64,000 nt of DNA from Geosiphon pyriformis uo1 (taxonomy: Eukaryota; Fungi; Glomeromycota): contig JAAOMT010000039.1 of NCBI GenBank assembly GCA_016748015.1, positions 152,259-216,258 on the forward strand, read 5' to 3'. Within the stretch, counting starts at the first letter, position 1, and each line of letters begins with the position of its first letter. The translations under genes were made by a program, and so were the position numbers. The notes under the pieces are model-generated. The model was given only the letters and a program-made list of their open reading frames with translations. It had not been told where the DNA came from and did no database searches. Below are positions 14,944 through 54,113 of this stretch, piece by piece.

Positions 14944-16229
14944 GTTTTATACAATTCATTTTGCATTTTCTAAGCTATATATTAAATGGGGCTCTTTATT
15001 ATTGTAATTTGCATTAGTAGAGTTATCCATAGCTTATTGATTTAAATCCCAAAATAAAGATATACAATTGAATATAAATATTATTTCACTTATCTTTATT
15101 TTACTTTGTGAAGTCTGCTATTAAAAACCTATCTTAAAACTTATATATAATCTTTAAATTTCATAAATTTATACAATTGGCTCAATAATATTAAAAAAGT
15201 TCCTACTTCTTTAAAATATAGTTTTAAATCACTATAAAGAATGAGAGTTATTATTCGAGTTTTTACTAAGTAATGAGTGATTCTCAAGCCAAATGTAACT
15301 CGAAATTTCAATTTGTTCATTCTTCCCCTTTGAATTTAAATTGACAAAGAATCAGAATATTTTTCTATTGAGCTTGCCCATATTCATCAGAAAATACAAA
15401 TCAAAATAGTTTTCAGACCTTCGTAATATCATATGTGTTACCCTATTCCTCCGAAACATTTTTCATATGATGAAATTAAATTTAATGAATCAAATTTAAG
15501 CCAATAAATTATTCAAATTCAATAATGCTTTTAAATAAAGCACCTTTTTATCATTTATATTAATATTCTACTCGAAAAGAAGAAATTTATTTTGACTCAT
15601 TTTTTTATGTTACATTATAAGTTCGACAATATGTACCATTCAATTCTTATTCTTTTCTAAATAATGAGAAACTTTCATTGAAATATTATTTTATAATTTT
15701 TATAGTTTTCCTTAAAGTATTTAAAGTATAAAGGTATAATTTAGAATACTTACAAACTAAAAAGAGTTTTTCAATAAGATCATTTCAATTATTTAACTTC
15801 TAACAGTCGTAATCTTAAAAATAATAATAATAATAAAAGTATAACCTTTATTATAACGTATTTAACTTTAATTTCAATTTCATATTACTTTTTTAACTTA
15901 TACTTAGAAATGTGTGTTTATGTTGATATTATGTGACGAAATTTGAAAGTCATAATATGTAATCAATAATTATATAAATTGAAATTACATGTTAAAAGAA
16001 ATTAAAATTTTGATATTTTTTTTAAGGATATCTGAGGATTGATATAACAATATTCTATAAAATAATCATTTCTTGATATTCCTCAAAAATAATTAGAAAT
16101 TCAGATTTTAGAGTTATTATTAAAAATTGTTTAATTTATTAGTAGTCCCAATGTATTTTTTAATCTATATTGTTCTTTTTTGGAATACTTAGACCTATCT
16201 ACAATATAATCCTTCTTTTTATTGATAAA

Positions 16230-17070
16230 TAACAACTCATTTATGACATTCAAATTATATTTTTTATTAAAAAAATTTCAACTTCATATTTATTATAGTA
16301 ACACATCTTTTTGAAAACTTACAACAAACAATAATTTAATATTTATGGTAAAAGAAATCTAAGAAATAGAGAATAATTTTTTTTAATACATAATATGATT
16401 GATAAAAATATAATATTTTAATTTTATTTCAAAAGGATAAATCATTATTTATTTTAATAGTTTTAATATTTTAAATCATCTTGACTGAAATTTACTATAT
16501 GAATCATATATCTAATTTCTTTTAATAAAGAATAATGGTAAGAACATTTAGGTCTTTTAAATATTATTCTGATAAATAAGAAAATTTAATAAAATACGAA
16601 AATTTGTAAAAATGAGTGATTCTTTTCCATAAAGATTTTATGCTTTGGTAAGTGATTTTATTTTTAGAAATATCATTTATATAAAAAGGTTGATTATAAT
16701 ACTTTAATAAAATATGCATTATAGAAAAAGACTAGTAAATAAAATTCTTTTTGCTTTATTATATCTAATTGAAAAAACATTTAAAATTTCCTAGAAATTT
16801 TTAATAAATTATAGGATGTAATATTCCATATTTCTTTAATTAGACTTTGATTAAATTTCATTAAAAACTTTTTATCTACATTATTGAAAAAACCTTGTTA
16901 AAATATCATCATTCTTTTCGGTACAAAGTAATTTTTATCTTAGCAAAGAAGTTATAAAAGCATGAAGTCTTAATATTTAAAGCTTATATTATTATAATAT
17001 TGCATACATTTTTCTACAAAAAGTATTTTCTATCATGTCAAAGTACTCATTCATATTTTTCTTAATCAAG
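16230..17070. repeat. Dispersed repeat family, copy 2 (more AT-eroded)
   Basis: Colinear with 11520-12226 and 51530-52686; shares tatgctttggta.gtgat with copy 1. Confidence 0.75.
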
Positions 17071-17119
17071 GATTTTAACTATCAATATTTTGTTTTAATG
17101 ACTGATGTTGATCTACTTA

Positions 17120-17262
17120 AGGACCGGGAACTAGTCCAGCCCTTCTTTATATATCCGAATACCCCCTCCCAAATCTTATTACTAATTAACCGAATTAGTA
17201 AGCCGACTAGAATATTCCGGCATATTCAGCGAGTATTCCTGATACGTCGCGAACTCGTGACA
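17120..17262 (-). mobile_element. Probable truncated LTR fragment
   Basis: A CpG-rich island in AT-rich DNA. The - strand begins TGTCACG (LTR-type TG start) and contains TATATAAA. No partner LTR or internal domain was seen. Confidence 0.45.
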
Positions 17263-19170
17263 CATAGAATGCATTTTTTATTATCATTAATATAAATTAA
17301 GATAAAATAATTAATTTTGAAAATATTATTAGATCTTTTTATGACATGAAAAAAAATTTTCAAGTTGTTTTAAAAAAGATTATTCATATTATTATCATTA
17401 TTTTTCGAATGATATACAATTATTTATTTTATTCAAAATATTAAATCGGAATTAAATAAACTGATAAAATATTTTTAACCCTTTTTTTAAAAAAACGTTT
17501 TAAAAATCAAAAATATATATTAAAATTATTGTTTGCTAAGAAATATTACATTTTATTTATTTATTTATATAATCTTTAAAAAATAATTTTAATTAAAAAA
17601 TGAAATTGTAAATGTGACAAATAAACATTAAATTAATTATGATTTAGAGTTGTAATTATGTGACAATAAGACATTTACATTAGTAATAATTTATTGTAAT
17701 ACTTTTATTGCCAATATAAATTATTGTTATCATCTTTTTATAATTGTTATAAATATTAATAATTTTTTAAAATATAAACTATTTTTATATATAAAATTAA
17801 TTAATTAATTAATTAAAAGATTATATTGATTAATTGAAAAAGGAATTAATTAAAAGAAAAATAATTATTGAATATAACAAAATAAAATTTTTTTGAGAAT
17901 TAATTTTGAAGAGATAATTAAATTTTAAAAGTATATTAACAATTTAAAGCTTAAATAAAAGTATTATTAACAACTTTTATTGATTTATTTTAAAAAAAAA
18001 TTGAATCAAATGTCAATTACTAAAATTCTATTTTTTTTAGAGTATATTTTCATATTTTTAAATTTTCTTTCCATTATTTCAACGACACGTGAATAAATAT
18101 TTTTTACAAGAATTTAAACCAATATGGTGGTGATTATATTAATACTATTTTCATTTATTCAATAAATCAAAAAGATCACATTAGTCATGTTTTGCTTTGT
18201 TTTAAAAACGAGTTGATAAAACTTTGAAGTTCCCAAATTTAAATTACTTTCAACACAATTCACTTTACAGACAAACTCGATTACAAGATATTTAAATTTT
18301 TTTAAATTTTTGAGGAAATCAGTTCCATTGTTACTTGCAGTAAAAATTATTAATTTTCATTTCATCTGCGACAAGCTGTGTTACAGCATCAAATTAATGA
18401 ACGTGGAGATGTAGAAAAACAAAGAGAAAAATATGTGCTTACTAATAAAGTAAATACCATACCAGAACTTTACATTCAGTTTTATTCTAGTTTCTTTTTT
18501 TGCTTATTGGTCTATACTTAGTTTCACAAATCTTGTCCATAATTGATTTAATGGGAAAAATATGTAAAGATCAAACAAAAGGGATTGAAATAAAAAATTT
18601 ATTTCCATTGTTGTGATTAAAAAAAAATTTATATTGGAACTTCAAGAGAAACTATTTAATTAAAAAAAGAATATTTATATTTATCTGAACTTGTGATGAA
18701 AACTTAATAAAAATTCATTAACCAAAATCTTTTACATTTATAATATGAAAGGTATAAAATATAAAACGGAAATTTTATAAAGATTATAAAATTAAAATTG
18801 TTAACTATTTTTGCATCAAATAAAATTATCAAGGAAAGCAAAACCTGCAAAAGAAATTTAAAGGCAATAAATATTAACAAGAAATTTGACACTTTTTTGC
18901 TGATAAAGTGGTATTTTTGAAAATTAATTTTATTCTATCATCCCTCAGCATCAATTAATCTAATCATACTGCTATAAACATTTTACTTTTGTTAAAATTC
19001 AATTCAGATAAATTCCTGCCAAAATTTTTCTTAAAAGTTCAGATTCAACTTTAAAATTTAACCTATCAAATATTATCTTTAGTTCCTGACTAAGGAGCTA
19101 TATGAACTATCTTTTTTGCCAAATTGAACTGAATATTGGCCTCATTTTTAATACCCCATATTTCTATGGT

Positions 19171-23140: not shown

Positions 23141-25468
23141 ATTCGAAAAGGCATCAATTTGTGAAAATTAAGGAGACTTGAATCCCTTGGACAAAAAAAC
23201 TTTATAACTTTTTGTAATTATATATTCCACAGAATTTCAACACATACAAATAGATTTAACTTTGTACAGCTCATAGATCATTTTTACTTCATCCCAATTC
23301 ATTTGTTATATATGCTTCAAACCATTGACTTTCCCAAACTATCATATCATTTGCATTTTTTCATCATCATTCCCTTAATTTCTGTTAATCCCAAATCCAC
23401 ACAATAATAATTTTAAAAAATGGTGTATACTTTTCATTTTTTCCTTCGTTTCACTTGAACTTTTCATTCTTGTATATACAGTCAATCTCTGGACCTATTT
23501 TATGAACCAAACATTTAGCAAAATAGTAAATTTTCACTTTTCAGAATGAGGCAAAAAGTGAAATAGTCGTGTTAAAGGACGAAACTTAAATTTTTAATAA
23601 TCTTAATGTTTGAATTGGTTTTGACTCGATAAAACCAAAGTCAATTCATTTTTTTATGAAATCCTTTTAATTGTGACAGTTACTTTAATTTAATTATTTC
23701 TAATGTGACAATGAGTTTAATTCAAAAAAAATAAAAACTACAAAAAAATCAAGTTCAAATGATTCTATCTTGTAATGAATTTAATATTGCAGCAAGAACC
23801 ACGTTGACGTTGTGTAACAACAAAGAATAAATAATAATGTTATTTTGAGGTTTTTAAAATTTCATTGGGTGGGCGCGTTTATTATAACCAGTTAGTTCGG
23901 TTAAAGACATCAAAACTGACGCGATCAAATATTTTTAATTACAAATTTATTCTTTATCAATGGCACTTTTTTCTTTAATTTCAAATTATAAATTCTCCAT
24001 TTCAGGATTATTTTTTTTCTAAAGTATAAAAATAATTTTTAAAGGAGTTCCAAAACAAATTCTTGGAGTATAGAGTTCTGCTCTTTTATATTATCCTAAA
24101 AAATATAAAAGAAAGAAATTTACTAATTAATTTATTAATTAATGCAAAAGAGAGAAAATTTTTTTATTATATCTGTTTAATCTGTAGGAATTATATATAT
24201 ATATATATCTATATATATATTGTAATTATTTATCAAATATTAAAAACATTTGATAAAAAATGATTTTTCTTTTTTTTAGAATTTATAACAATATATATAA
24301 AAAGATATCAACAGGATGTTTATTGATAAAAATATGATTATTGCTTTAAAAAATGGTTTATTAAAATAAAAATTTTTAATAAATATTAATTAAATTATAT
24401 AATTAATTATTTTTTTACTCATTTTCAAATGAACTTAAAAATTTAATTTTAATCAATTTAAAAAATTATTTTTATTTTATTTTATTGGTTTCATAATAAT
24501 TGGAATTAAGTTCTTATTTTATAATAATTTTTATATATTAATTATATATTACTTAATTTTTTCTAATTATTAGTTTTTTAGTGTTAAGAAAATATTATTT
24601 TAAATAATAATCAAATTAAAAACTATTTATTGACTATTATTTTTATGTATTTTCATAAATAACTAGAAATAATAATAAAATATTAAGTTTTATAATTCCT
24701 TAATTTTTTTTTCAATTGAATAAAATTTTAATATTTTTATTTATTAACATTTTAAAATATTTTAATAAATAATAAGTTAAAAATAAAATGAATAATGTAA
24801 TACTATTGTTTTTAAATCAACTAAAATTTAAAGGTTTTAATTTTTTATTATATATAAAATAATATTTTAGCAATATCAATTTTATAAATATTAAATTAAT
24901 TAATTTAAAAGATTAAAAATTTATGTTTTAATAAGCATTAATATTTTTAATAATTAAAAAAGTTTTATTAAAAAAATTGAATTAAATAAAATTAAAGCTT
25001 TTTATTTATAAAAACAATAATTTATTAATCTTAAATTTTTAAGTTAAAATATAATATATTCAAACAAAAAATTAATTCGAAAATTAAAAATTAAAAATAA
25101 TATTTGTAATTTCAATAAAAAAAACAAATTAAAAACAAAATTTATTTTTTATACAAGTTATTTATTTTAATAAATTGATAATTTTTGTATTAAATAAAAT
25201 ATTTAATTTTATTTATTATTAATAATAGTTAATTAATTAAATTATATTTTTTAAAACAATATTTTTATTACTTTTAATTTGATAATAGGTATTAAAATAC
25301 CAAAAAATATTTAATTTCAAATTTTAATAACATATTTTTTAAAATATAAATTTTTAATTATTATAGTAAATATTTTATTCAAAACAAATATTCTTAATTA
25401 TAAAATAAGCAATTTTATATCAAATTATCAATAGAGTTTTAAATTTAAAAAATAAGAAATAAGTTTTT

Positions 25469-25540
25469 ATTTAAAAAACAATTTTTTGTTTCTTAATACA
25501 TTAAAAACAATTTTTTGTTTCTTAATACATTAAAAACAAT
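25469..25540. repeat. Tandem duplication, ~29-bp unit, about 2.3 copies
   Basis: ttaaaaacaattttttgtttcttaataca repeated. Confidence 0.85.
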
Positions 25541-26986
25541 ATATATACAACTATTTATAATTAATTTAATAATAAAAATAATTTATTAAATATTAAAGTA
25601 TTTAATTCAATATTTAATAATAATAATAATAATTTAATTGTTATGTTAAATATGTAAATATTAAAAAATTTAAAATAAATTTAAAATAATTAAATCTAAA
25701 TATAACACATATATTTTTTATTAATTATAATAAGTATGTATTATAATTTTTAATATTTATTTATAATTTGTTATTGAAAAAATTGGCAAAAATTACAACA
25801 ATAAAATTAAATATTATAAATATTTTTATTATATTTAATTAAATTTTAAACTAATTAGAAATTTAATATATAAACTTTTCATTTTATTCTATTTTTATTA
25901 TTATTTATAACTCAAAAATTTTTTTGGTGTTCAATAGCATTAATCTTAAATAAATTTAATTTTGTTATAAATTTCAATTAAATTATATTAATTATATATA
26001 TTAATTAATAAATTATAAATAAATTTTAAGTGTTTTGAAAATGATTTATTACTTTTTTTTATAATTGCTTACAACTTAATCGTCATACATTAGAAGTGGA
26101 TCGCACGGCACGTGACCAGTTACTCACACATTAATGTTTATATCTAGTTTAAAAATAAAATTTATTTATATTAATAGAATTTTTAAAAAAATTAATTCAA
26201 AAAAATTAATTTTCTATTATATAATATTTGTATTTTTGATTAATTATTAATTTAATAATAATAAATTTGAAATAAAAAATAATATTAATCAATTATTATT
26301 AAGTGTAAATATTATATTTTAACATAATTGCAAATGTATTTAGACTTTTTATGCTTAAAATATATATAGTTTTTTTGAAATCCGTTCTCATTAGTTTTTG
26401 TTTTTCACAATTTGTTACTTTTTTCTTTGAAATCATTGAAATTGAGCGTAAATTAAAAATAGTGGGACAAGCCTAATTTTAATCTAAAAGTTTAATTTCT
26501 GATTATATTCAAATATAAATTTTGTCACGTGTTAATTTAATGTCTATTTATATAATACACAATGTTATTGGCCGATTCGGCGATTTATATATCAACCATT
26601 AATTATCAAGAATTCTTGGGAACGAGATTTTCAAAATTTACCTTGTAAATAAAATAAATGGCACAATGGTCGACTTCTCTACTTATATTATTCTTTCCTT
26701 TCGATGACCCCATTTGTTGGTTGGACAAAAAGCTTTTTTTTAGTTACATCATGCAGAATTCAGGCAATAAATAGAAATATGTGTGACGTTTCTCCATTAT
26801 GCACCACACAAGTCTTTTTCGTTTCCCTTTCATGAGGAACAAAATATCGAATTTCCCCAAACTCTCTTTTTACTCCTCGACGTTGTTTACGCTACAACTT
26901 TAATCACTTTTTTTCACATTTCAAAAAAACTCAACCCACTGATTCAAATTTCACTCGCTCCATGTTTTAATTCATTTAACCATTAA

Positions 26987-29900
26987 ATGCCTTCCGAAAA
27001 AAAGAAACATTTTATATCTCCACCTCCTGGTTTAGATTTCGTTACTCCACCTCATGATTCTTTGGTCGACGACCTAAGGTACGCGCTAGAACATGCGCGC
27101 GAATTATTCCCTGACATCGCATGGGAATTTACACTTGCACTTACGCCCACAATTGTTTATGCCCATAAATGTATGTCAATCGTTGCAATAGTTCTATTAT
27201 CTACTTTTTATCAAAGTTAGAAATCTATACAAAATCAAACAACATTGATGAGTCTGATAATTAACGTCCTTTGACGCACCTGTGTTTTGAATTTAAACAA
27301 TTATTCATGAATGTCATTTTACATGTCTCTATTGAAAGCTACAAAATCATTGACAATATATTTATTTATTTTCTAGCCATATTATACGCACGAAGTTCAC
27401 GTACCTTTCAGGAAAATTTTTTAAAAATCAAAGATGCAAATGGAATGTCAGTGCGGTCCATGAGAATGTCAAATCCGGAGCCAATAATTGTAAAAACAGA
27501 AGCAAATCCATTTTCACTTCGGCAGGAATTAAAATTTTTTTACACGGGTGAAGAAGGTAGTGAAGAGTTTTTGGCTGCAGTTGATACTACGGCTGAACTT
27601 GAACAAGACAAATTGAAAGAGGATTTACTTTACATGCTTAAATCAAAACTTTATACGGACGTTGAGTTGTTACTGTCCATTTCTGAGGATTCTCTGGATA
27701 TTTTCCCGGAAGAGGACTTTACACCCACTTCACATCGTGCCCATCGATTTATGCTTGCTTCGAGGTCAGAATACTTCAAAGCTATGCTGAACTCCCAATT
27801 CATTGAGGCTCGCCTATCCACAATTCACTTAGATGCTAGCATTTTTACCCCAACATCTCTCAACTTGATTCTTACATTCGTTTACACTGGAAATCTATCA
27901 TCCTCATCAAAACCTCTAACCTTGGAAACATGTGAAATGGTGTGGATAGGAGCAGATTTTCTTGGCATAAAATCATTATGTGACGAATGTGTACATCGTA
28001 TCGCAACAAAGGTTCACTCATTTTCATGTACGTGCGCCGAATGTCAGGCAGTTATTCCGCGAGTAGCTGGTTTTGCTAAAGAGCATCATGTTGATATGCT
28101 TTGGCAAGGATCGCTGCACGTGTTGTCACAAGGCTTCGATAGTATGTGGCCTCAAAAAGCCTTTGCAGAATTAGAGGAAAATATTAGGGAGGAGGTTCTT
28201 TTGAATTTATTAGCCAAAATTCAAAATAGTAATATTGTTGAAACTTTCAGAGGATGCCGAAAAATACTTGCTATTATTGAGGTTAAAGGTATCGGATTAC
28301 CTTGGATAGAGATAATACGTGGGATGGCTAACCATGTCCGTTCATATACAGCTGGTATATTGGTCGATGATTTTCAGCAGCTCTGTGAAGAGGATAAAGA
28401 ATTTTTAAATTGCGTGGATGGAGTTGGCTTCAGCTCAGATTTATTAGAAGACATTATGAAGATTGTAGTCGAAGAAGGTCTAACGGAGCAAAACGCTGGA
28501 ACTGTACTTAATTGTATCACTGGTAATTTATTGTTGAGGGAAGCTGTTCTGGATGCAGAGAGTGTGGAAACGAAGCGAATCCTACTTCAAGCGAAACAAA
28601 ATGTCTCCGATTATATCAAAAAAAGGTGGATTGGGGTAAAACAGCATGGTGGGTTCAGCGAGTTAAAAGATTGGCTTTTAGATGAGTTTGCACAAGGTAA
28701 AAGCCATTCACGAATATTTGGTTTTCTGTTTTTAATATTTTAGCCATTGATATTATCACCTTCGCAATGTCGTTTTTTAATGATAAATATTTTATATTTC
28801 TAGATCTTGGTATTACAAAAGCGGAATTGACGGAAACTGTTAGTGAACCAAAACCAAAATCTCGAACACCTGTGACAACAAATGGTATTCGTACCAACGG
28901 AAAAACAACCTCCCCCTCTACTTCACCTAAAGGTAGAACTACTCCATCAACAAAATCATCCTTATCGCTGGGGTCTTCCTCAACAGTTACAAAGACCATT
29001 TCAACATTTACCACAATCTCAACAACCAATTCAACAGGTTCTTCCAGCCCAAAAACAATTCGAAGATCCGCCACAACATCGGTGGCATCCTCGACTGGTA
29101 GTTCAAAAGCTTCTGATCTTTCTGCTGCCAAAAAAAGCAAAAGTGTACGCATTGTGACAACTCCAGCAACATTTGGACGACCAACAAGAGCGAGTGTTTT
29201 GCGTCAGAAAGCCTTAGCAGAAGCTGCTGCTAAAAATCCAGTTAAGCAGAGAACAAAGACCATGCCTGAACGAATTTCCAATTCTAGCACAAATAGTGTC
29301 AGCTCTCTACCGCCGGTCGCTGGATTAAGTAAATCTAAATCAGCTAGCGCATTAAACTCTCGCGTGACGCGGCCAGATTCAAAATCCTCACTAAATGTGC
29401 CAGGAGTATCGACACCTCCAGCTCGAGGTCGTATTTCAACAAAACAAACAGCATCGGCAGCTTCTTCACGGGCAAGTTCTATTTCATCGATTCGTTCATC
29501 AAAGTCACCTTCTATTTCACCTAGCCGTTTTGGGGGTGTACGTCAAACTCGAGCTAGTATCCTTCGTCAACTTAAGTTTGACGAAACAGAACAACGTCGT
29601 GGCCGGGATCGACAACGTAAAGCTTCATCTCCAACATCTTCAAGGGCAAGCTCGATAGCTTCCGTGTCATCTGTTGCAAGTTCAACAAACTCTTCAAACG
29701 TTGTGCATCCAAAAAGATCAGGATCACAATATTCCACATCTACCAGCATGACAACCGCATCTACTGGGTCAATCAGTAGTTTACCAGCTAAACCTCATCA
29801 AACGAAATTATCTACCACAAAAGATCCTGACATTTCTGTGGGTAGGAGAGTAATTCTACCGACAAAAAACAATTCTCCTGGTACTATCCAGTTTTTGGGC

Positions 29901-30132
29901 GAAACAGAGTTTGCCAGGGGTCATTGGGTGGGAATAGCACTAGATAATCCAGGTAAGTTATTGGTTATATTATGAATTGTTTTAAATTTTTAATGAATGG
30001 ATACTTACATATTTTTAATTTGCAACACATTTAGTTGGGAAGAACAACGGGACTGTTGCCAACATACAGTACTTTGAAACTTCTCCAAATCAAGGCATCT
30101 TTGTGCGACCTGACTCAATATTAATAATATAA
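26987..30132 (+). CDS. BTB/POZ + S/T/R-rich linker + C-terminal CAP-Gly protein (~916 aa; exons 26987-27170, 27377-28696, 28804-29952, 30035-30132)
   Basis: Three phase-1 GT-AG introns give a continuous frame. Tandem BTB-like segments: YAHKSILYARS and HRAHRFMLASRSEYF...FVYTG. CAP-Gly: VGRRV...[32 protein letters not shown]...YF...GIFVRP. Confidence 0.92.
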
Positions 30133-31169
30133 ACTGCCAGGGGATGTTCCTTCACAAAAAATCGCGCATTTAGATGATGGGGTCAATAGGCATGCACCTG
30201 AACAACTAAGATTTCATATACGACCAAAGCAGATCATGCGGCAAAGAATAGAATTTCTATATCCGTAGATTTCCCTTGTCAAAATAGATCCAAAATCAAG
30301 GACGAATAGATTCCACTTAGATTAAAGTTTGGAAGTCTCATAAAGCAGTAAAAGAATTTTCAAATTTTTTATAAAAACACTGGGCATGAAGCAACAAAGG
30401 AATTTAGGTATTTTGGGAAATAATTTCAATGAGGATCAACCATTCTTTCCGATTCCAAATAAATTATCTTTAGCCTAGAATCAATCCTTTCTGACCACTC
30501 TTTTACCCTTCACATAATTTGTGGACAATTCATTTGCCATTTTTTGTGATAGTTTTCTGTGTTTATCCCTGGTCTCCCATTCCCTAAAAATGATTTTAAA
30601 AGTCATATTCCTCTTTGACTACATCCATGTTTTCAAAGACATCTTGCTTCACATTCCCTTAATTATTCATATCTAGCCTTTGCGTGACCATCTAGTGTCA
30701 ATTGGCGGGCATGTTTAAACTTTCTTTAACAACCCTTACTTCATAATTTTAGTGATATCAAATCATGACGATAACCCTTGTAATTTCCTATCACTTGGTT
30801 AATCTAATTCAATGCCCAATTTTGGTTATTTATCCCATAATATTATTAATAATTGTAATACCTACCTTTAGTTGGGTCTATCTAGTTTTTCATCAACCAT
30901 TGTATTATATCAAAGATTTCAAAAAGCTAGGAAAGAGGAAGCGTGATCGCGGTTTTCCAAAAAAATCCTTGTTGAAAGTAGTCTTGCATGAATTATTGTC
31001 TGTTGATCAGTTATAAGAAACTATATTCAAAACATTAGCAAGCGAGCCAACTCAAAATATAGTCACCGTTAGAATCAAAAATTTTCAAATAAATGACTAA
31101 TATTTAAACTAATTCATTTATCCCCTTGCGTCGTATTGAATTAATCTTTGACCATTTCAAAATGATATT

Positions 31170-31245
31170 TCCTTGACAGAAATTATGCAACAAATCAATA
31201 ATAGGGTAATACTAAGTATTGCTATATAACTCCTATTATTTCCTG
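31170..31245 (-). ncRNA. Candidate omega-RNA scaffold / right end of Fanzor copy A
   Basis: Starts at the ORF stop. Stems AATAATAGG/CCTATTATT and AATAC/GTATT, plus an overlapping AGTTATATAGCAA/TTGTTGCATAATT pairing. The 5' part is conserved in copy B. Confidence 0.5.
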
Positions 31246-32470
31246 GCTTCATCAAACAATGCCCAGAGGAAATCCCCCCGAGCGCCATCTACCAGAATCC
31301 TACAATATTGGTAGTTGTACACTTTGGACCCTTGGATCCTTTGGATGTGTCACGCTAACCACAAGTCTTGGATATATAAGTTTCATTCTAAATAATAGCA
31401 TGGACCTTAATTGCTAATCAGACTTTGTCGAAGCGATAATGCCCCAACAAAGCATTTTTTCATGTAATCTTTCTTGTCTTGCGATTCACCGTGTCCGACA
31501 CTTTAGGAGGAATCACAATCGTATCAAATTCGCGAGAAAAGAGTCACTGAATTTTACGTCTTATCAAGTCTCCAGGCCATTTTATTCTTACCCTTTGAGG
31601 AGGATGCTAATAGCCTATCCTTTTTGCAGATGAGGCCCAGAAAAAAAATAAAGTAGAAGATGGAACCTGATAAAGAAAATGTATATCAAGATCTACATGC
31701 AACTTGCAACAGTATCTAGTTCTGTCTCATGCTAGCAGTGCCAAGTTGAGGCTCTTGAACAAAGATTGGTTGACAAAATTACATGAGGCATAAAGTTTAA
31801 ACTCTGAGCCTTAAAATTGTCCTAATCATCCAAGTACTTGCAAATACGAACTATACGTTCAATAATATGTTCGTCAATCTTGCCTACACCCTTTTGTGCT
31901 AGGTAAAAGGTATGGACGCCGAGACAGTACTATCCACTTGGATTTCGCGGAGCTGTTTTTGCATCTCATATACCCAGAAAAACTTCCACTCACTCGTTTT
32001 GGGAGAGGTGAGCTTGCCATTTGACATTACTTGTGAGGAATAGGGTACCTATGATTATTCCTCCTTTTTTCAAAATGAAGTCACAGAGCACGCTTCGATA
32101 TCGAAATGATAGAGTGTATTTGGAAGAACTTGTTGATTCGCGTTTGTCTCTTGTTGATTCATGTTTAACTTTTGCTAATTTACATTACGCCTAATTACTT
32201 CTTCCCTAGTAATCAATGCTTCATCGATGATATTGGCGGGCGCTTTGCTGTGCATACCCCGAAACACACAACAATTCGCATTAACTTGCGCTTAGCATTT
32301 TCGAGTTTCTCGTCTTCGTGTTTGCTAGCGTCTTTTTCTGCCCAAATATCTGTATAAAGCTTAAGTTTATCTTTGATGGATTGAGGCCTGCTGTGATGGA
32401 CCGCTTTTTGTTCATTGTGATCACTCAATAATAGTTTCTAAATTTAAAACCAAGACCTAGACAAATTAAT
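31236..32470 (-). pseudogene. Fanzor2 / IS607-TnpB-like RNA-guided nuclease, decayed copy A
   Basis: Frame-hopping translation gives SRSWF...IIDEALITREEVIRRN...KYTLSFRYR...GVHTF...KGVGKIDEHIIERIVRICKYLDD|LICKKDRLL...FSREFDTIVIPPKVSD.VNRKTRKIT..MLCWGHYRFRQSLI..IIxNETYISKTCG...GSKVYNYQYCRILV..GARGI...ALFDEA. These match RuvC-I, bridge helix, RuvC-II, Zn ribbon and RuvC-III in order. Confidence 0.88.
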
Positions 32471-32479
32471 AAAATTTTG

Positions 32480-32700
32480 GAGCTTCGAGCACCATAATGC
32501 TATTCGATAAACTCAGATGTGTTGGATTGCAAAGACAGTGATTCCGTTTGCACCACCAAATTCAAGTTGAGTGTAATTTTCTTCCTTTCTTGTTATTATT
32601 CAAATACGAACGTGGTTAGTGGGTACTCTATGCCTCTGTCGGCCCACTTAGGCAAATCATGTTGCATTCTTCCGATTGAGCCATCCGAAAATGAAAACTG
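32480..32700 (-). pseudogene. Possible collapsed IS607-type serine recombinase (TnpA) remnant
   Basis: Upstream of Fanzor A on the same strand: LPKWADRG (cf. MerR-HTH LRxWxxxG) and EFIE*HYGARSS (cf. C-terminal ...YGxRS). The catalytic core is not visible. Confidence 0.35.
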
Positions 32701-33368
32701 AGAACCCAATCGCGGTAATTATAGAAACAGAAATCTTGAATTGACACAAGAAAAGTCTCAAACCCAAGCTAAAGTCCAAAACTAGAGGTAAATTAATGAA
32801 AGACGGTGTAATAAGCTTAATTCTCTTTGATGGTGCGGTTTAATAATAAAAAATACCCGACAGATAATGTTTATAGTGCCGATAGCAAAATTGCCACTTA
32901 TACTTTTTGGAGTTCCGAATAATAAGATAACATCATGATAGGAAATTTTCAGGACGTATCCAGTTTCAAATAATTATGAATTCACAAATCTGTTTCTGGA
33001 AATTCAAAAAATCTGTTTCAAAAAAGTTTTTGGAATTCAAAAAAGTGTTAATAGTCAAAATCGTGCAACATTACCCGATTTTTTTAAGTCCAATTTTTTT
33101 GGGTGATGAGCTCATAATCACTGATTCTTTGGAATGTATGTATTCAAAGTACCCTAACCTCAATCATAAATTTATCATCACCTATACGTCACTTGGTATT
33201 ACCAGTACTATCATGCACAAGGAAAATCAATAGGCATTAGCCGAAATAATGATGTATGATGGATTTTGAGTTCCTTCTTTTGACTGGAATTTTTTTTTTG
33301 GACTTATATAAAAAGGAGGTCTGAGTTATTCCCTTAGTTATCTGGCTCCTTTTTTTTAACACTTAATT

Positions 33369-34550
33369 ATGACTTGGAAAAATAATTCAATGGTCAAACA
33401 ATCTACATTACTTAAGATTAACCATTTCTACTCTAAATTTCCACGAATTCTCACAACCATACTTTACTTAGTATATTTCTTGAGTTTATCAACAATTTCA
33501 TGTTGGGCTTCCCCAATTGAGAAACGCGGTGTGGGGAGCGACGCCTCACAACAAAATAGCGATAATGGTATGTTTTTGATTTCCGTGATCATATGATTCT
33601 AAAAATCAAACTGAAATTTCTTCTCAATTATATTTTTATAACGCGTTACAGCCAGCAAAATTACGGTACATTCAACCATCCTTGGCATATTATTGATCGC
33701 GTTAGGGTTCGTCTATTGTTTCTTTGGAAGGAGATTTTTTCGAGTGACAATTTTCATACTTGGGTTCTATATAGGCTGTAAGTATTTACCTACTGACTCG
33801 TAAAGTTGAAGTTACGTAGAGTTGAAATTTTCACATTTTAACCGTATGATTTGTAAAACTTTCAAAGCTATTATCGCTTGGGTAATATTAACAAACGCAG
33901 AACCTAGCAAAGGATATGGCAAAGGGGCAGCAACTATACTCTTAGTGGTCTCCCTTGTGTTTGGGCTTCTTATTGGTCTTTTAGCCGTGTGTTGCGCAGA
34001 TTTCGCTGTTTATATGTTGGGTGGGCTTGGTGGTATGTATCCGAAGTTCAGAGAACCTTTGGCCGATTGAGATAATAAGAATACTTATATATATTCCTGA
34101 ATTTAAGGTTACGTCCTTGCCATATTCATCCTAGCCTGGGGAAATGATGGAATAATTACATCAAAAGCCGGCAGAATTATCTTTATATTGGCCTTTATTA
34201 TTGCTGGTGTGATCCTAACGATGTTATTTAAAAATATTCTCATCATCCTTTCAACCTCTTTGATTGGTGCCTACAGTATCATTCTTGGCATTGATATATT
34301 TGCTCGGACAGGGTTCAAGGAATCAGTTCGTCATTTTATGGATGGAAACCATGGCATTATTTATCATGCTAGTGGTAAAGTATATGGGCTGTTGGTAGCA
34401 TTGTTGGTGCTCTTTATTGCAGGGAGTGTATTTCAATGGAGATATCATAGAGGTCATGATTTCGGATACCGGAATGAAGCACCTGCAACAAAGAATACAA
34501 TTGGTAAAAAAAGAAATTGGAGGAATATGTTTAGCAGGAGAAGTGTGTAA
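33369..34550 (+). CDS. DUF4203 (TM7SF3/TMEM198-like) multi-pass membrane protein (exons 33369-33567, 33652-33777, 33868-34032, 34108-34550)
   Basis: Three phase-1 GT-AG introns. Motifs GFVYCFFGRRFFR, LGGLGGY and ILSTSLIGAYSIILGIDIF. Signal-like N-terminus followed by KR. The start could be 33390 instead. Confidence 0.9.
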
Positions 34551-34939
34551 ATCTTAGCCGCAGGGTAATAAGATAAATGCCCGAAAATCAATTCCCGCCA
34601 TTTAATTACATTTAGTTTTTATATTCCCTTTTGATTTTAAACCCTAACAATTATTTTGAATTATTTATTGTACTATTTAAGTTGACATTGGTGCTGACGA
34701 ATTTTTTTCTTCTCGTTGAGAAGTATTAGTATACAAATCTTGATACGTTGTAAAATTGCTACCTTGTAAAGAGAAAAATTAATAAAACCATTGTGTCGAG
34801 ATTGAAAATAGCTCTTTAAACTAGCTTTAATTAAATGAAAAGCATACTTGCAGTTGCTTAAAAAAGAAACTGAACACGAAAAAATCGAATTTCTCGCCAA
34901 GAGTAAAAAAGTATATTCGTTAAATCATTTTTATCACTT

Positions 34940-35735
34940 TCAGTGTATTGTGACAGAAACCGATATTTAAAAACGAATTTCTCAAAGTAAATTACCAAAC
35001 TAAGAGTAAAGATCCCTAGCCCTTTTTGGTACCGAATCGATTAACCTTTAACAAAAAACGATTTCAATGCTATTCCAGGCAATTTATAACTTTTCCCACG
35101 CATATCTACTTCATTCCATAAATGCTCGACTGGGTTTAAATTAGGAGACTGGAAAAGAATTATGAAACCATTTGGCGATCTTTTAATATATTTTCCAACA
35201 ATACTTTTGCCCATCTGACCCGAATAACTGGTACTTGCTTTCCTTTGACCAGGCTACTCTTCGATGTTTTTGTCCATAGTAGTGAGTCTAGACTTCAACG
35301 GCGGTGGAGCATTTCCGGATGATATTAGTCGGACAGCATTCTGTGGGCGACAGCTTTTGGTTTCTCATTGAAGCTCCCCGTTTCTTTTTTATTTTTGCAT
35401 ATGTTTAGAGCCGAAACCAGGGCTACCTGCTTTGATACAGCGGTTTCGTGGACCATGTATCCTTCTTTTCCCAGTGTAGATATATCGGGAGCGTTTTCTT
35501 GTAAAATCCGAGCATTGAAATAAAAAGAATGTTGTGTGAGATGAAAAAATTTAACTATTTATATTTAGTGGAATCTTAAGGCGATAAAAATTTAAAAATC
35601 CTTATTTTAATAAAGGAAAAATATAAAAACTAAATTATATGATATTTGTCATTTTAGCGAAAATATTTTATATGCTTTTGGCATACAATTCTTCAATGGC
35701 AAAATATTCGAATCTCGACATTTTTTCGTGTCTGT
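34940..35735 (-). mobile_element. Tc1/mariner DNA transposon remnant (internally deleted)
   Basis: - strand fragments read KPKAVA/RLISSGNA, RVAWSxESKYQLFGSDGQKYCWK and QSPNLNPVEHLWNEVD (Tc1 DD34E motifs). One end reads CAGTG at ~34941; the other candidate end is CTG|TA at ~35735, but the TIRs match poorly. Confidence 0.8.
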
Positions 35736-35789
35736 ATTTTTATTTTAAAATTAACTCAATTCCATTTTCTAGGTTACGATGCTTTCGGA

Positions 35790-36900
35790 TGGATTGCTAT
35801 ATAACGCGTATTACTTCTTGCAGGACCAAGGCTCCATCTCCTGAGCGCCATTTTCATTTTTATCTATCACAATCCCACAATTCTGACAGTTTCACACTTT
35901 GAACCCTCGGACTCTTTGGATTTAGCCACACTGACTAAAAGTCTTTGATGTGTTAGCTTCGCTCTGGATAATAGCACAAACCCCTGATAACTCGGCCTTT
36001 GCTGATCAAGCGTTGTCGAAAGTGAGAATGCACCCAAAAAAGCATTTTCTAATTTAATCTTTCTTGTCTTGCGATTTGCCATGTCCGACACTTTAGGAGG
36101 GATCACAATCGCGTCAAATTCGCGAGTAAAGAGTGACTGATTTTCACTTTGCAAACGTATAACTTTTCACCCCATCCGAAAAATCGCCTTATCAAGTCGC
36201 CAGGCCATTTCATTCTTATATTTTGAGGAGAATGCTAATAACTTAGCCTTTTTGCAAATGAATGGTGATAGGCTTTTAACAATTTATAGTACACATTGAC
36301 GGGTTATGAAAATGAGTGATATAGAACGGTTTTATGTGGATTGTTAAAAATCATATTGATAAACCTTGAAGTTTTTCGTCTTTACCCAAACATCTATGTA
36401 AGATCAGGTTTATCTTTGATGGATTGAGGCCTGTTGTGATCAAAATTTTTGGCGATGTCATTGAAATAATCCGATTAGCGATTTTTGACATGACCTAGTA
36501 TTATAAGCAACCCAACCACCGCTCGAAGTGCTTCTTTGAAGATGGTTTTGATCACCTTGATTAATAATATACGGTTGAGAATATCTTTCATCTTCTGACG
36601 TTTGCGACGAGCTGTTGTCGCTTTTCTCTTGTGCTATTCGCCTGTTCTAACGCTTTTCGCCGAAGAGAGCCACAATTTTTGCAGAGACCATACCGCGGCT
36701 TGTTCGTTACAATAGGGTCTTAAGTCCCAATCGTTTGAAATTGATACCTGACCCGATATCGCTGAGGAGTTTGCAGGTTGAAAATCGAGAAAGGGGGAGT
36801 TGCTTTTGTAACTTTTCTTGTTAGCATAGTTGGTGGTAATATCAGAAGTTAACTCAGTAAAGAGAGAGGTGGAATTTATTTTCACAATTTTGAGCCTGAG
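35790..36900 (-). pseudogene. Fanzor2 / IS607-TnpB-like nuclease, decayed copy B (internal deletion)
   Basis: N-terminal DLRPYCNEQAAVWS.QKLWL, then ICKKAKLL...LDKAIFRMG*KVIRLQSE...FTREFDAIVIPPKVSDMANRKTRKI..MLFWVHSHFRQRLISK..IIQSEANTSKTFSQCG...NCQNCGIVIDKNENGAQ. 36030-36260 is clearly paralogous to 31445-31633, and 36408-36440 to 32364-32397. Confidence 0.88.
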
Positions 36901-37572
36901 AAGCACTACTTAGCTATTAATTGGTATTTTTATTAATAGGTATTTTTAATCAATCTTTTCATTTTTAGAAGAATTCCAATTAAGTTTCAGTCCTCATGAT
37001 GGAAAATAAAAGACAGATACACCAAATAGTGAGTTTTGTAAAAGTATAAATAATATACTAACAAACTTAACTTAAAAAATTAGCATAATAAAAGGTTTTC
37101 TTATAATGAAAATCTATAATAATGAAAAGACTTTGCTAAAAATGATAAGTTATTTCTTACTAATTTGGTTAATTATTTCTTTGAAATATTACAAATTCAA
37201 AAGAAAATTTATATATATTAGATCATTTATATATATTAGCTGGAAGAAATTGTAAGATATAGAAGATCAGTGAAACAATTTATACATGTAACTATGTTTT
37301 TAAAAATGAAAAAAAAATCTCACATGTAATTTGTAATATTGGCTGAAGCTGATTATTGACCATTGAGAAGTTTAACCCAGTTTTGGGAATATCAATGATC
37401 AGATGGTCCCTGCTCATTTAAGACACACACTGTACGCCAAATTTCTCATTTAAAAAGTTTAGTTGTGGCATGTTTGCTGGAATCCCAATTAGATATCTTA
37501 AACTTCCATTCATTATATAACGGATAACTCATTAAATTTCTATTTTTAAAAACTTTATCGATTGATGTTAAA

Positions 37573-45100: not shown

Positions 45101-47226
45101 TTACAGATTTTTTATGAAAAAATCCTTAATATTTTCAAACTGTTGTAAATTTATTGTATTCATTTTCCCTTAAATCCTGTTTAGTTTAAAGTCACAAATA
45201 ATAGGAAAAAAATGTCCAATTAACAGTCATTTAATATTAGAAATGATTAAAAAATATTTTATTTTAATGTGAAAAACAATTAAATTAACAAAGTGTTCAA
45301 AATATCAAAAACTTGAAAAGAAAATTAAAAAAATAGGCTTATATATAGAATAATGATTAGGATCAGTGATTTTTTTAAAAAATAAACATAATAACAATAT
45401 AATAATTAAAATCATAACTTTCTAAATGTTGAAAATTAATTTTGAATAATTATTTAGACTACAATATATATATTATTATTTAAAGGGTATTATAAAAAAA
45501 ATAGTTTCCATAAAAAGTAACATTTTAGTATCGGTTTCAAACCTTACACATGTACATGTACATATGTACCTTATTAATTACCATTTATAGTAAAGAATTG
45601 ATCATCATTTTTTCAAGTTGCTTTCTGTTTTACTTTTTTAATGTACTTGAAATTATTATTATTATTATTATTATTATAATTATCATGATTTCTTAAAATA
45701 AATATGGGAATTACATTTTTAATTCATAAAAATAATTCCGTAGAGAAATAGAAAAATAAAAATTTCGCAACCCTTTTTTTCAATAAATTTCATCATTTGG
45801 AAGTTTCCTTTACATTCCTGTACTTCGGATATTACTACTTTCGTTCTGCATTACCAAAAAAATTGACAAAAGAGAACGTAAAAATCATTTTCAATATTTA
45901 TAGTTAAGAGCATTTAGAAATTAAAAATAGTTTTAGAATTTTTGATTTGACGAATTTTATTTTTTGATAAAGAGTAAATAAATGAAAAGAATGTTTTCAT
46001 AAACAAATATTCATGATCACAGGGCTTTAAAAATTGAAAAGACAATCAAAAGGATTTTTCAATTGTATCTTTCATTTTTTCTGAAATAAAGTTAAAAAAA
46101 TTAAAAACAATACAAATATTGTTTGAATAGAATAGAATCTAAAAGAGGAAGCATTTTCAATTTAAAATTCATTATACAAGCCCCTAAAAAAATGTAAAGG
46201 GTAACAAAGGGAATCATAGAAATTACAAAAAAAGCCATTTATGATTCTGCAATAAATTATCGAAAATAAGAAAAAACAAAGATATGGAGAAGATTCTCAA
46301 AAGATTTGATACCATCTTTATCCATAAAAAAAAAAAATCCAGTTTTTCAAATTTGTTTAACAAAGATGTATTCATAATTGAAAATTCTCTCTTTTAGATT
46401 TGTTTTTGTTTTAGGGTCTCTCTTTGAAAATAAAATTTATTTTAACGCGATAAAAATTTGAATATATATAAATTTTTTTGAAGGATTAAACTAAAATATT
46501 TTATTTACTAGATTTTTTTCGTGTGAGTGCTTAAATCTAATATTTTTTATATATTATATACAAATAAAAAGTGGTTTTATTGATAGTAAAATTCATATTT
46601 CATTCAAGAAAGTACATTAACTGATTATTTGTATGTGTGATTCTTTAAAGATATCTATCATTTTATTATTCTTTTATATCAATCAATCAATCAATTAAAA
46701 ACTGATAAAAATTTCGGATCAAATAGATTTGGTTTTTGGAATATCTGAATATCTGATATTTAAATCACGATTTAAAGATATCAAGTAGAACAATAGGAAA
46801 AAGACAATATTTACCAAATATTGTTTTTCAAAAATTAAAATCACAATGTGATTTGTGATTGTCGATTAATTCAGTTTTTTTTTTTAAAATATTATACCCT
46901 CGTGAGATGGTGATAGTGGTGTCTTAAATACCCGATACACAAAGAAATGTTTATAAAAATTGTTTATTGAAAAAAAAAAAGAAGGTATTTCGATTGTCAC
47001 GGACCATGGGGGGTGGGGTTGAATATCAAACAAATTTTTTTAATGACATAAAAATACCGTTTTCCTGAATTTATCTTTCGTCATTTTTTCTTTCGTCAGA
47101 GAGATAGAAATCTTTAAAATCTTTAAAATCATTACAAATTTTATAAATAAATTTGATTTTTTTTTAAACGAAACAAATTATTTTAAAATTAATTAATTTA
47201 TCATGGTATTAATAGCCCATGCATTC

Positions 47227-47262
<36 letters not shown>

Positions 47263-47731
47263 NNNNNNNNNNNNNNNNNNNNNNNNNNNNNNNNNNNNNN
47301 NNNNNNNNNNNNNNNNNNNNNNNNNNNNNNNNNNNNNNNNNNNNNNNNNNNNNNNNNNNNNNNNNNNNNNNNNNNNNNNNNNNNNNNNNNNNNNNNNNNN
47401 NNNNNNNNNNNNNNNNNNNNNNNNNNNNNNNNNNNNNNNNNNNNNNNNNNNNNNNNNNNNNNNNNNNNNNNNNNNNNNNNNNNNNNNNNNNNNNNNNNNN
47501 NNNNNNNNNNNNNNNNNNNNNNNNNNNNNNNNNNNNNNNNNNNNNNNNNNNNNNNNNNNNNNNNNNNNNNNNNNNNNNNNNNNNNNNNNNNNNNNNNNNN
47601 NNNNNNNNNNNNNNNNNNNNNNNNNNNNNNNNNNNNNNNNNNNNNNNNNNNNNNNNNNNNNNNNNNNNNNNNNNNNNNNNNNNNNNNNNNNNNNNNNNNN
47701 NNNNNNNNNNNNNNNNNNNNNNNNNNNNNNN
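47263..47731. other. Assembly gap
   Basis: Run of N preceded by poly-A. Confidence 1.
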
Positions 47732-47889
47732 AAAAGATTAATTTTTTAACAAAAAAAGTATATTTTGGTATCATTAATTTATTTAGTATCTTAATAAATT
47801 CTGTATCAAGAAAACCTGAGAACAAAAAAACAAAGATGCGACAAATAAAATTTTATATTGTTCACAGGTAAAGGAAAAAACTTTTTGTA

Positions 47890-47931
47890 TTGATGATGAT
47901 TATGATCATGATAATGAAAATGATGATGATC

Positions 47932-48001
<70 letters not shown>
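47890..48001. repeat. Compound (ATG/ATA)n microsatellite
   Basis: Directly visible. Confidence 0.95.
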
Positions 48002-51529: not shown

Positions 51530-52686
51530 AATAGTAACTCATCCATGGCATTCAAGTCATCTTTTTCATTTTTTCATTCATATTTCATCAAAACTTTTTT
51601 TCAAACTTCATATTCATCATATTTGCACATAGTATCAATCCCCATTGCATATATTTTTTTTAGGAAATCATAACAAACAACAATATAATCTTTAAAAATA
51701 AAGCTCGTGGTAAAAATTTCTGAAATATTTGATTTTTAATAATGGGGGAATTTTTAAAAGAACCCATAACACAAACGATATGATTGATGGAAGGATAATG
51801 TTGTCAAGGTGTGCCATCAATTTTTTGACTCTGATCTGTAGATTACAATGTGGATTGTATGTTTTTATTTTCGTAATTAATAATCGTAATGGATAATGGT
51901 TAAAATATTTTTTAAATTTATTCATTCTAATTAAAAGATAAATAATGAATGTGACTTGCGTGAAAATCTTTAGCAATTTTTTGAAAATATTATTTTGTAT
52001 AGAAAAGTTCATTATTTTTAATTATATAGTTTTTTAATAGAATGTAAATATTTTCAAAGCATAAAAGAGCCAGTATTAAAAATGATTTTTGCTTTTTTTG
52101 AAAAAAAAAAAAAAAAAAAAATCATTAANNNNNNNNNNNNNNNNNNNNNNNNNNNNNNNNNNNNNNNNNNNNNNNNNNNNNNNNNNNNNNNNNNNNNNNN
52201 NNNNNNNNNNNNNNNNNNNNNNNNNNNNNNNNNNNNNNNNNNNNNNNNNNNNNNNNNNNNNNNNNNNNNNNNNNNNNNNNNNNNNNNNNNNNNNNNNNNN
52301 NNNNNNNNNNNNNNNNNNNNNNNNNNNNNNNNNNNNNNNNNNNNNNNNNNNNNNNNNNNNNNNNNNNNNNNNNNNNNNNNNNNNTAAAAAAAAAAAAAAA
52401 AAAAAAAAGATCATTAACAGCTTTTTTCACTCACTCGACATTATTGAAAAAAACCTTTGTGAATATCGTTATTATTTCAGGACAAAAAGATTCCTATCTT
52501 GGAGAACAAGTTAGAAAAAAGCATGGGGTCTTAAGATTTAAAAGCTTTTGCATTGGTATTACTATATATATTGCATACTACCCCCTATTTTTTTTTTCTA
52601 TAGCTACACAACAGAAAAAAAATATCTTTTTCATTTCCTTTGTCATCATCATGTCAATGCACTCATTTTAAACTTTTCTTAATCAA
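51530..52686. repeat. Dispersed repeat family, copy 3 (interrupted by assembly gap)
   Basis: Colinear with copies 1 and 2 on both sides of the gap; ends ttttcttaatcaag. Confidence 0.75.
52129..52384. other. Assembly gap
   Basis: Run of N flanked by poly-A + atcattaa on both sides. Confidence 1.
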
Positions 52687-53448: not shown

Positions 53449-53554
<106 letters not shown>

Positions 53555-54036: not shown

Positions 54037-54113
54037 ATATTTGTTTCATTTTGATTTAAATTTCAAAGTATATTTGTTTCATTTTGATTTAAATTTAAAA
54101 ATATATTTGTTTC
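54037..54113. repeat. Tandem duplication, ~33-bp unit
   Basis: atatttgtttcattttgatttaaattt repeated. Confidence 0.85.

Follow-up and report, generated by a model that had tools for sequence, protein, structure and literature searches.

A 64,000-nucleotide (nt) stretch of the genome of the glomeromycote fungus Geosiphon pyriformis uo1 (contig JAAOMT010000039.1, positions 152,259 to 216,258; hereafter the window) raises the question of what two stop-broken regions on its minus strand once encoded and how they came to be there. An initial annotation, made from the sequence alone, had read them as decayed loci of Fanzor2, an RNA-guided nuclease akin to the TnpB of IS607-family insertion sequences. 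Here it is argued that the two loci, A and B, are very probably two independent, ancient and dead insertions of an IS607-type DNA transposon ('IS607EU'), and that their identity as decayed Fanzor2/IS607-type elements, once mobile in the Geosiphon genome, can be held with equally high confidence. The more interesting result concerns the relatives of these relics, in which the gene of the serine recombinase TnpA is nested, in a conserved manner, within the open reading frame (ORF) of the nuclease.

Six-frame reading of positions 31150-32550 and 35700-36950 recovers, at both loci, the motifs that had been quoted for them, distributed over three frames and broken by stop codons. The claim of two minus-strand relics therefore stands in six-frame and profile searches, with their extents corrected by homology to other copies (Table 1). 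In a six-frame scan of the whole assembly, PF07282 (Cas12f1-like TNB, formerly OrfB_Zn_ribbon; cut-off 26.3 bits) matches B at 35841-36014 with 40.3 bits and an E-value of 4e-8, single pieces reaching 21 and 12.6 bits. Locus A matches the superfamily through a family profile only, with an independent E-value (i-E) of 3e-9. This nuclease profile, built from 20 full-length relatives of which none comes from the Geosiphon genome, aligns to B at 35841-36002 (i-E 3e-12), with weaker collinear matches at 35992-36057, 36050-36220 and 36634-36837, and to A at 31358-31567 (i-E 3e-9), with a marginal match at 31822-31914; it finds nothing comparable elsewhere in the window. Given the PF07282 match and the matches to an independent profile, the motifs of A and B lie far beyond chance, and tblastn likewise brings both loci to TnpB/Fanzor proteins.

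Across the relics, the order RuvC-I, RuvC-II, Zn ribbon, RuvC-III is maintained, with the residues partly destroyed. A glutamate stands six residues before the first CxxC (SE-ANTSKT-FSQC in B, NEAYTSKTCSQCG in the family), IVIPP occupies the position of the canonical glutamate, and the DPG of RuvC-I is present in the family members or close relatives P0004, P0152, P0007, P0029 and P0155. A relocated glutamate combined with Pro or Gly at the canonical RuvC-II position is the published criterion for Fanzors and pro-Fanzors (PMC10711439; Jiang et al., PMC10530073), and is common to Fanzor1, Fanzor2 and pro-Fanzor TnpBs (PMC10711439; PMC10530073; 2026 review, PMC13565253). Since all Fanzors and pro-Fanzor TnpBs share it, this residue does not discriminate Fanzor2 from Fanzor1, and its use as a Fanzor2 marker in the initial annotation has to be abandoned.

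The Fanzor2/IS607 label itself is upheld on other grounds. A profile of the C-terminal ~90 residues of the family finds its best match in the solved Fanzor2 structure of Acanthamoeba polyphaga mimivirus (ApmFz2; 9b0l, 'TnpB-like protein L79'; E 2e-19). Cas12f/TnpB chains come next, none better than 1e-13, and Fanzor1 chains are absent up to E 1. In line with this, the full-length relative P0049 aligns to residues 88-464 of 9b0l (E 4e-29), and its AlphaFold2 (AF2) model (predicted local distance difference test, pLDDT, 80; predicted template modelling score, pTM, 0.69) matches 9b0l with a Z score of 27.3 over 416 aligned residues (model residues 18-469). TnpB and Cas12f structures match this model only from about residue 92 onward, and no Fanzor1 entry occurs among the top 50 of the fold search. 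Another relative, P0155, carries PF12323 (HTH_OrfB_IS605) together with PF07282.

Besides the nuclease, B holds a relic of the TnpA catalytic domain (..LSDIGSGINFKRLGLKTLL..), the sole match in the window to the TnpA profile; it shares 64% identity with the intact TnpA of the related locus L133 (tblastn, E 3e-8), and the catalytic-Ser motif upstream of it is deleted. Genome-wide, PF00239 (Resolvase) matches three places with 32-40 bits, coinciding with tblastn matches of the N-terminal piece of B. An IS607-type TnpA can be read in one frame of the sister copy L026 (..YGRVSSTKQKEDLERQ.., ..SDIGS.FNFKRSGLETLLE.. and ..RDRL..), and ..DLRPYWNEKAEGYQKLW.. in the frame after it. Three intact relatives have, in the other frame, an intact TnpA with a MerR-type helix-turn-helix (HTH) and a resolvase domain, and the intact TnpA of L133 scores 64 bits with PF00239 and 28.6 bits with MerR. 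In the metagenomic locus L054 (3916-4686), no ATG precedes the catalytic Ser in the TnpA frame, and the overlapping nuclease ORF has its ATG at 4001, which may reflect either a defective tnpA or unusual initiation.

This recombinase relic bears on the alternative that A and B were Fanzor1 genes carried by a DDE transposon. Fanzor1 is known within Mariner/Tc1 elements (PMC3627910), and a Tc1/mariner-like transposase relic (..SPNLNPVEHLWNEVD..) does lie on the minus strand at 35041-35520, between the TM7S3 gene and B, with a DDE_3 match (E 0.05, ..NLNPVEHLW..) at 35041-35214, on the same strand as B and just downstream of it. However, the 3' boundary of B, at which homology to other copies ends, is at 35786, and ~270 nt separate it from the Tc1 relic region, whose upper limit is ~35520. 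The Tc1 relic is a separate dead transposon, unrelated to B; moreover, neither the sequence nor the fold matches include a Fanzor1 structure, and a serine recombinase, not a DDE transposase, lies within B. A Fanzor1 origin can thus be given almost no credence.

The two Fanzor2/IS607 relics preserve different parts of the element. When mapped by tblastn against P0029 (647 aa) and P0155 (648 aa), A keeps nothing upstream of about residue 240, lacking TnpA, the N-terminal extension and the Fanzor HTH, and retains a REC remnant, the WED strands with RuvC-I, and the region from RuvC-II to the Zn ribbon. In B, of which ~1.17 kb is left of an original of at least 2.1 kb, the N-terminal extension, the basic stretch and the beginning of the core survive; the next preserved part corresponds to residues ~474-623 (35841-36271), and most of WED/REC and all of RuvC-I are missing. 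Catalytic residues have decayed accordingly: B, without RuvC-I, retains the alternative glutamate and the RuvC-III Asp, whereas in A the decay of DPGVRT to CLGVHT has removed the catalytic RuvC-I Asp, and RuvC-III has shrunk to VDGARG with loss of the DRD motif. Neither locus is able to make protein. These maps agree with the complementary deletions proposed in the initial annotation; a reconstruction of the element, on the other hand, would rest on at least 100 copies and not on these two.

Direct repeats connect A with B, and both belong to the same repeat family, as had been proposed; they are not each other's closest kin. Their identity is 64% over the best-aligned 225 positions, below the 70-78% that each shows to other copies, and their flanks are unrelated. 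On this comparison, A and B are separate old insertions and not a local duplication; a segmental duplication is ruled out by the same two observations.

The family to which they belong is large and, as far as was searched, entirely decayed. The 128 Mb genome contains at least 118 PF07282 matches by six-frame scan, 83 DNA matches to B and, among 393 first-look candidates, 69 matches to P0155. Two proteins, P0001 and P0007, match GenBank proteins of G. pyriformis exactly. All family matches are stop-bearing or short; no open frame longer than ~290 aa lies over any of them, and no plausible full ORF was found among the 50 loci examined. Intact relatives, whose existence elsewhere had been suggested as possible, do occur, as P0029 and P0155, only in other samples, and none turned up in this genome. 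Pairwise identity among 39 distinct copies has a median of 0.69; to the column majority (computed solely to gauge divergence) the median is 0.83, A reaching 0.80 and B 0.75, and the changes are most often G>A and C>T. About 40 copies share a 3' end (..TTGATGTGTTACAATCCATCCG, also written ..ATCCATCCG) ~20 nt past the family stop codon, beyond which their flanks are unrelated; in B this end is CCATCCG at 35786-35797. A common 3' end with unrelated flanks is the signature of a once-mobile element, which bears out the claim that the family was mobile in this genome. It amplified to at least 100 copies and then died out. A third decayed copy (G000:C483:74038-75428), which includes the TnpA/N-extension part, lies on the same contig, ~77 kb upstream of the window.

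The same copy structure speaks against the view that A and B are fragments of endogenised giant viruses (Nucleocytoviricota) that carried IS607/Fanzor2, and not products of transposition within the fungal genome. Many relatives do come from giant-virus contigs of IMG/VR, and giant-virus insertions in fungi have reportedly been described in one paper. However, the repeat unit is the element alone, with its common 3' end and unique flanks in ~40 copies; A and B are flanked by ordinary fungal genes (an intron-bearing TM7S3/TM198 gene, BTB and CAP-Gly); and the fungal-type clade stands apart from viral sequences on the tree described below. Viral fragments are thus an extremely unlikely source of these loci, although a viral vector is possible for the first entry of the element.

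Geosiphon houses intracellular Nostoc, and cyanobacterial pro-Fanzor IS607 elements are the nearest prokaryotic relatives of the family, which makes direct entry from this endosymbiont a further alternative. Cyanobacteria, including a Nostoc, share the nested tnpA/tnpB architecture described below, and Fanzor2 was derived from cyanobacterial IS607 by Yoon et al. (PMC10711439). Against this, a FastTree phylogeny of 129 sequences (midpoint rooting only, without Fanzor1 sequences) joins the Geosiphon fragments to P0004, P0152, P0029 and P0155 with 98% local support, and this group to P0010 and P0011 with 100%, all six from other samples. This fungal-type clade lies on a separate long branch, at a path of 2.0-2.2 from bacterial and viral sequences alike, no cyanobacterial sequence is a near neighbour, and the copies are old and AT-adapted. 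Direct transfer from the endosymbiont is therefore improbable.

At the 3' end of the element, the best-kept copies show a hairpin (AAUAAUAGGC..GCCUAUUAUU) in the conserved block, directly before the terminal motif; the block overlaps the ORF end and finishes ~20 nt after the stop codon. From its sequence and position, it is a candidate for the end of an omega-RNA scaffold.

Several observations weigh against the interpretation of A and B as members of a dead Fanzor2/IS607 family, or limit what it can explain. Pfam scans of single in-frame pieces were mostly blank, and six-frame and profile searches were required. The full-length query was scored on the best 68 of the 393 candidate places, and no intact copy was found among these, so that a rare one may remain; with no intact copy found in the genome, activity, guide RNA and target-adjacent motif are unreadable from it. 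The right end of the element is defined, but the left end in B is located only to ~36959. The 3' block has no match in Rfam, and its fold z-scores are weak (-3.0 in the best-kept copy, L030, -1.4 in L012, -1.6 in L044, -1.2 in A and +1.3 in B, where a deletion removed half of the hairpin). Finally, the tree gives no call between a viral and a bacterial origin of the fungal clade.

The N-terminal motif of B (RPYCNEQ..QKLWL) leads to the second result. It lies in the +1 frame relative to TnpA, on the same DNA; the initial annotation was right to take it as genuine and missed that this DNA also encodes TnpA one frame over. A motif PFW..S.KLWLPT.TD..SWF occurs in nearly all long relatives, with two Trp invariant in 20 sequences of ~35% identity. 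The arrangement was followed in 82 loci from metagenomes, one SRA contig and IMG/VR giant-virus contigs (L051, L052, L054, L133 and L055-L132) and in 80 loci from bacterial genomes (L140-L219), retrieved with C-terminal peptide patterns. TnpA is present in 59 of the 82, and in nearly all of these the nuclease frame is the +1 frame of TnpA, with an overlap of 450-780 nt and the two ATGs often less than 15 nt apart. The same nesting is found in most of the 80 bacterial loci, chiefly from cyanobacteria (Microcoleus, Nostoc, Calothrix, Scytonema, Brasilonema) and also from some metagenome-assembled genomes (MAGs) of Poribacteria and Caldilineaceae. The ranking query contains the extension, so the share of nested loci is biased upward; the codon tests below are unaffected.

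Two such tests indicate that both frames are constrained. In 47 distinct viral/eukaryotic TnpA cores, 51 stops occur in the +1 frame against 207 expected from synonymous-codon shuffles, and 690 against 685 in the +2 frame; in 54 bacterial cores the corresponding numbers are 33 against 221 and 615 against 642. The shortage of stops, 4- to 7-fold, is confined to the +1 frame. Codon use in single columns agrees with this. Where TnpA has an invariant Leu, the codon is TTG or CTG in 44/47 and 54/54 sequences, yielding the nuclease Trp; a Val is written GTG in 29/31 and 46/46, which gives the Trp of SWF, and adjacent Val, Ala and His columns are restricted to the single codons required for L-W-L-P-T. 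Synonymous sites are therefore fixed where the Fanzor frame requires Trp, Leu or Pro. By contrast, codons are mixed in other Leu and Val columns, and conserved positions in the HTH region of TnpA show unrestricted codon use, with stops in +1. Conservation is stronger for the nuclease-frame residue than for its TnpA counterpart in several columns.

These data decide against the possibility that the N-terminal extension is a gene-calling artefact, the real start of the nuclease lying downstream of tnpA. Such an artefact would fit the observation that global alternative-frame identity exceeds synonymous shuffles also in the control +2 frame, which makes that test non-discriminating and led to reliance on stop counts and per-column codon use; it would also fit the ranking of loci with a query that contains the extension. 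Yet neither point accounts for stop depletion confined to +1, for the codon choices that give the conserved Trp residues, or for the columns in which the nuclease residue is the better conserved. Moreover, the AF2 model of P0049 orders the motifs (helix 24-32, strands 41-46 and 64-69), and its residue 18 aligns from residue 53 of the ApmFz2 chain, within an N-terminal domain that Schargel et al. found absent from other TnpB structures. An artefactual extension is accordingly very unlikely. For B in particular, the reading of RPYCNEQ..QKLWL as an out-of-frame product of tnpA is ruled out by the codon tests and by conservation of the motif in full-length proteins.

Dual coding, with both frames under selection, is thus very likely on this evidence from codons and alignments. 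The Fanzor/TnpB literature searched, in which coverage of subscription journals was partial, yielded no account of near-complete nesting or of an N-terminal domain coded in two frames, and no priority is claimed; IS607 orfA and orfB are described there as genes that 'often overlap' or 'partially overlap' (PMC6188088; PMC9956272). That nesting in the pro-Fanzor/Fanzor2 IS607 clade (cyanobacteria, giant viruses and fungi) is both real and not yet described is offered tentatively, at somewhat less than even confidence. If it holds, the 'RuvC-R' and 'thumb' of ApmFz2-type proteins would share nucleotides with the catalytic core of the recombinase. It is a further and rather doubtful speculation that leaky scanning yields two proteins from one capped mRNA, a pre-adaptation that could help to account for the colonisation of eukaryotes by this TnpB clade alone.

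Some individual nested loci deserve mention. In L109, which we take to be from a chlorovirus, the nuclease ATG is at 2983 and the TnpA ATG at 2988; ISvAR158_1 of ISfinder presumably shows the nesting already. Nested IS607 elements occur in L140, L149, L156-L159, L161, L179, L182, L186 and L216, assigned to MAGs of Bacteroidetes, Poribacteria and Caldilineaceae. The Bacteroidetes MAG, 'Glo_2', is a 1994-nt contig with the best match in the bacterial collection, and the Poribacteria and Caldilineaceae lineages are sponge-associated. These non-cyanobacterial elements may represent either real spread or mis-binned contigs.

Among known systems, the closest is Fanzor2 in IS607EU (Bao and Jurka, 2013, PMC3627910; 9B0L, PMC11832414), with the same order of HTH, WED/REC, split RuvC and Zn ribbon, the same DPG (at the family level), a glutamate six residues before the first CxxC, and a MerR-HTH serine recombinase as partner, an association established for IS607-like elements (PMC3627910). 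Likewise, the N-terminal domain of the modelled relative aligns to residues 53-130 of ApmFz2. The Geosiphon copies differ in being dead, and the fungal-type clade (Geosiphon, P0029, P0155, P0004) in its separate long branch. Cyanobacterial pro-Fanzor IS607 TnpBs (Yoon et al., 2023, PMC10711439) share the DPG, the alternative glutamate and the serine recombinase, as well as the +1 nesting and conserved Trp motifs seen in this analysis; they differ in their prokaryotic hosts, their intactness, an identity of ~30-40% to the query relatives and a position not near the fungal clade. IS607 of Helicobacter pylori and other bacteria (PMC6188088; PMC9956272) has the same two ORFs, orfA for the serine recombinase and orfB for TnpB. 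Its overlap is published as partial, whereas here tnpA lies almost entirely inside the nuclease ORF and, unlike in the published bacterial elements, the overlapped part encodes conserved, structured nuclease motifs. In canonical TnpB the glutamate lies ~50 residues upstream of the Zn finger. Fanzor1 (e.g., SpuFz1 of Spizellomyces punctatus) is likewise a eukaryotic TnpB homologue with the relocated glutamate and DPG, multicopy in fungi, but it has DDE/Helitron carriers (Mariner, Helitron, hAT), no serine recombinase and Fanzor1-specific insertions (PMC10711439).

By analogy with these systems, the living element would have been ~2.1-2.4 kb long, a size suggested by the intact relatives, with tnpA, shifted by one frame, almost wholly contained in the 5' third of the Fanzor2 ORF. 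Its TnpA, with a MerR-like HTH and a resolvase domain, would have moved the element by cut-and-paste without terminal inverted repeats. Fanzor2, comprising the N-terminal domain, HTH, WED/REC, split RuvC with DPG and relocated glutamate, and Zn ribbon, may have bound a guide RNA from the 3' end of the element, as TnpB and ApmFz2 do, and could have cut the empty donor or target site, leading to biased inheritance of the element.

The relics matter little in themselves. They add the glomeromycote G. pyriformis to the hosts of Fanzor2/IS607, with a burst of at least 118 copies that fully died out, and thereby bear on where and when OMEGA (short for obligate mobile element-guided activity) nucleases acted in fungi. 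Bao and Jurka (PMC3627910) list fungal Fanzor2 for a few yeasts only, and Fanzor1 for Mucoromycota and chytrids; no link of Geosiphon to Fanzor, TnpB or IS607, and no glomeromycote family of at least 100 copies, was found in the literature searched. As such copies are invisible to ORF callers, they are useful for the annotation of transposable elements. The origin of the family merits a proper phylogeny, given that the host carries intracellular cyanobacteria, the supposed donor group of Fanzor2. The nesting has wider consequences: DNA shared by a nuclease N-terminal domain and a recombinase core, in three domains of hosts, constrains the evolution of the element, affects where start codons are placed in the cloning of Fanzor2 and pro-Fanzor genes, and provides a testable idea of how a two-gene bacterial insertion sequence can be expressed in eukaryotes.

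Table 1. Features of loci A and B and of neighbouring genes (window coordinates; strand as read)
Feature	Position	Strand	Basis	Residues and state
Locus A, 5'-truncated relic	31177-32403	-	Homology to other copies 31180-32403, ending there; 3' end ~31177-31198	
A: REC/WED-region remnant ..PANIIDEA..	32159-32403	-	blastn to other copies, 70-78%; repeat D3 matching B 36385-36440	Equated by eye with the PYxIRDxA motif of the relatives' consensus
A: WED strands and RuvC-I remnant	31825-32077	-	tblastn to P0029 389-484 and P0155 391-476	GVHTF..GKI..RICKYLD (RuvC-I remnant) at 31825-31929
A: ~180 nt without homology to any family copy	31640-31820	-	Copy coverage falls to zero	Inserted or extremely decayed sequence
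A: former RuvC-II site, alternative Glu NETYISKTC, decayed Zn ribbon, RuvC-III	31239-31567	-	Profile i-E 3e-9; tblastn; frames	FDTIVIPPKVSD..NRKTRKI and ETYISKTC at 31361-31564
A: conserved 3'-terminal family block	31177-31261	-	Alignment of 42 copies	ORF end, hairpin, ..TTGAT.TGTT.CA..
Locus B, IS607-type element relic (TnpA and Fanzor2)	35786-36959	-	Homology to other copies 35790-36959	
B: TnpA catalytic-domain relic	36668-36808	-	TnpA profile (101 intact sequences), i-E 4e-10	
B: Fanzor2 N-terminal extension	36658-36831	-	tblastn to P0029 48-104; profile positions 35-101, i-E 5e-4	
B: basic stretch KRK..RRKRQK and Fanzor core start ..LLIKV..	36478-36633	-	Frame read directly; by-eye comparison with P0029/P0155 (KGKKRK.., LQLKMYP)	No statistical match in this interval
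B: RuvC helical region and former RuvC-II site FDAIVIPP	36047-36271	-	tblastn to P0155 474-553 and P0029 497-559; profile i-E 1e-3	FDAIVIPPKVSDMANRKTRKI within the interval; Pro where the canonical Glu is expected
B: alternative Glu SEANTSKT, Zn ribbon, RuvC-III IDKNENGA	35841-36045	-	PF07282, 40.3 bits; profile i-E 3e-12; tblastn	MLFWVHSHFRQRLISK at 35998-36045; SEANTSKT..QCG, NCQNCG and DKNENGA within 35841-36002; first CxxC now FSQC through decay, second (NCQNC) preserved; interrupted by two frameshifts and three stops
TM7S3/TM198 gene, between A and B	33693-34550	+	PF13886; exons 33693-33803, 33822-34070, 34188-34550	Apparently intact
BTB/POZ (490 aa ORF) and CAP-Gly (402 aa ORF), upstream of A	27271-29975	+		Look like ordinary host genes

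With respect to the neighbourhood, the gene that the initial annotation had placed between the relics and assigned to DUF4203 is confirmed there as a three-exon TM7S3/TM198 gene. Blocks of 10-17% GC (8001-10000, 16001-18000, 24001-26000, 46001-48000 and 52001-56000) alternate in the window with gene-bearing DNA of 30-40% GC.

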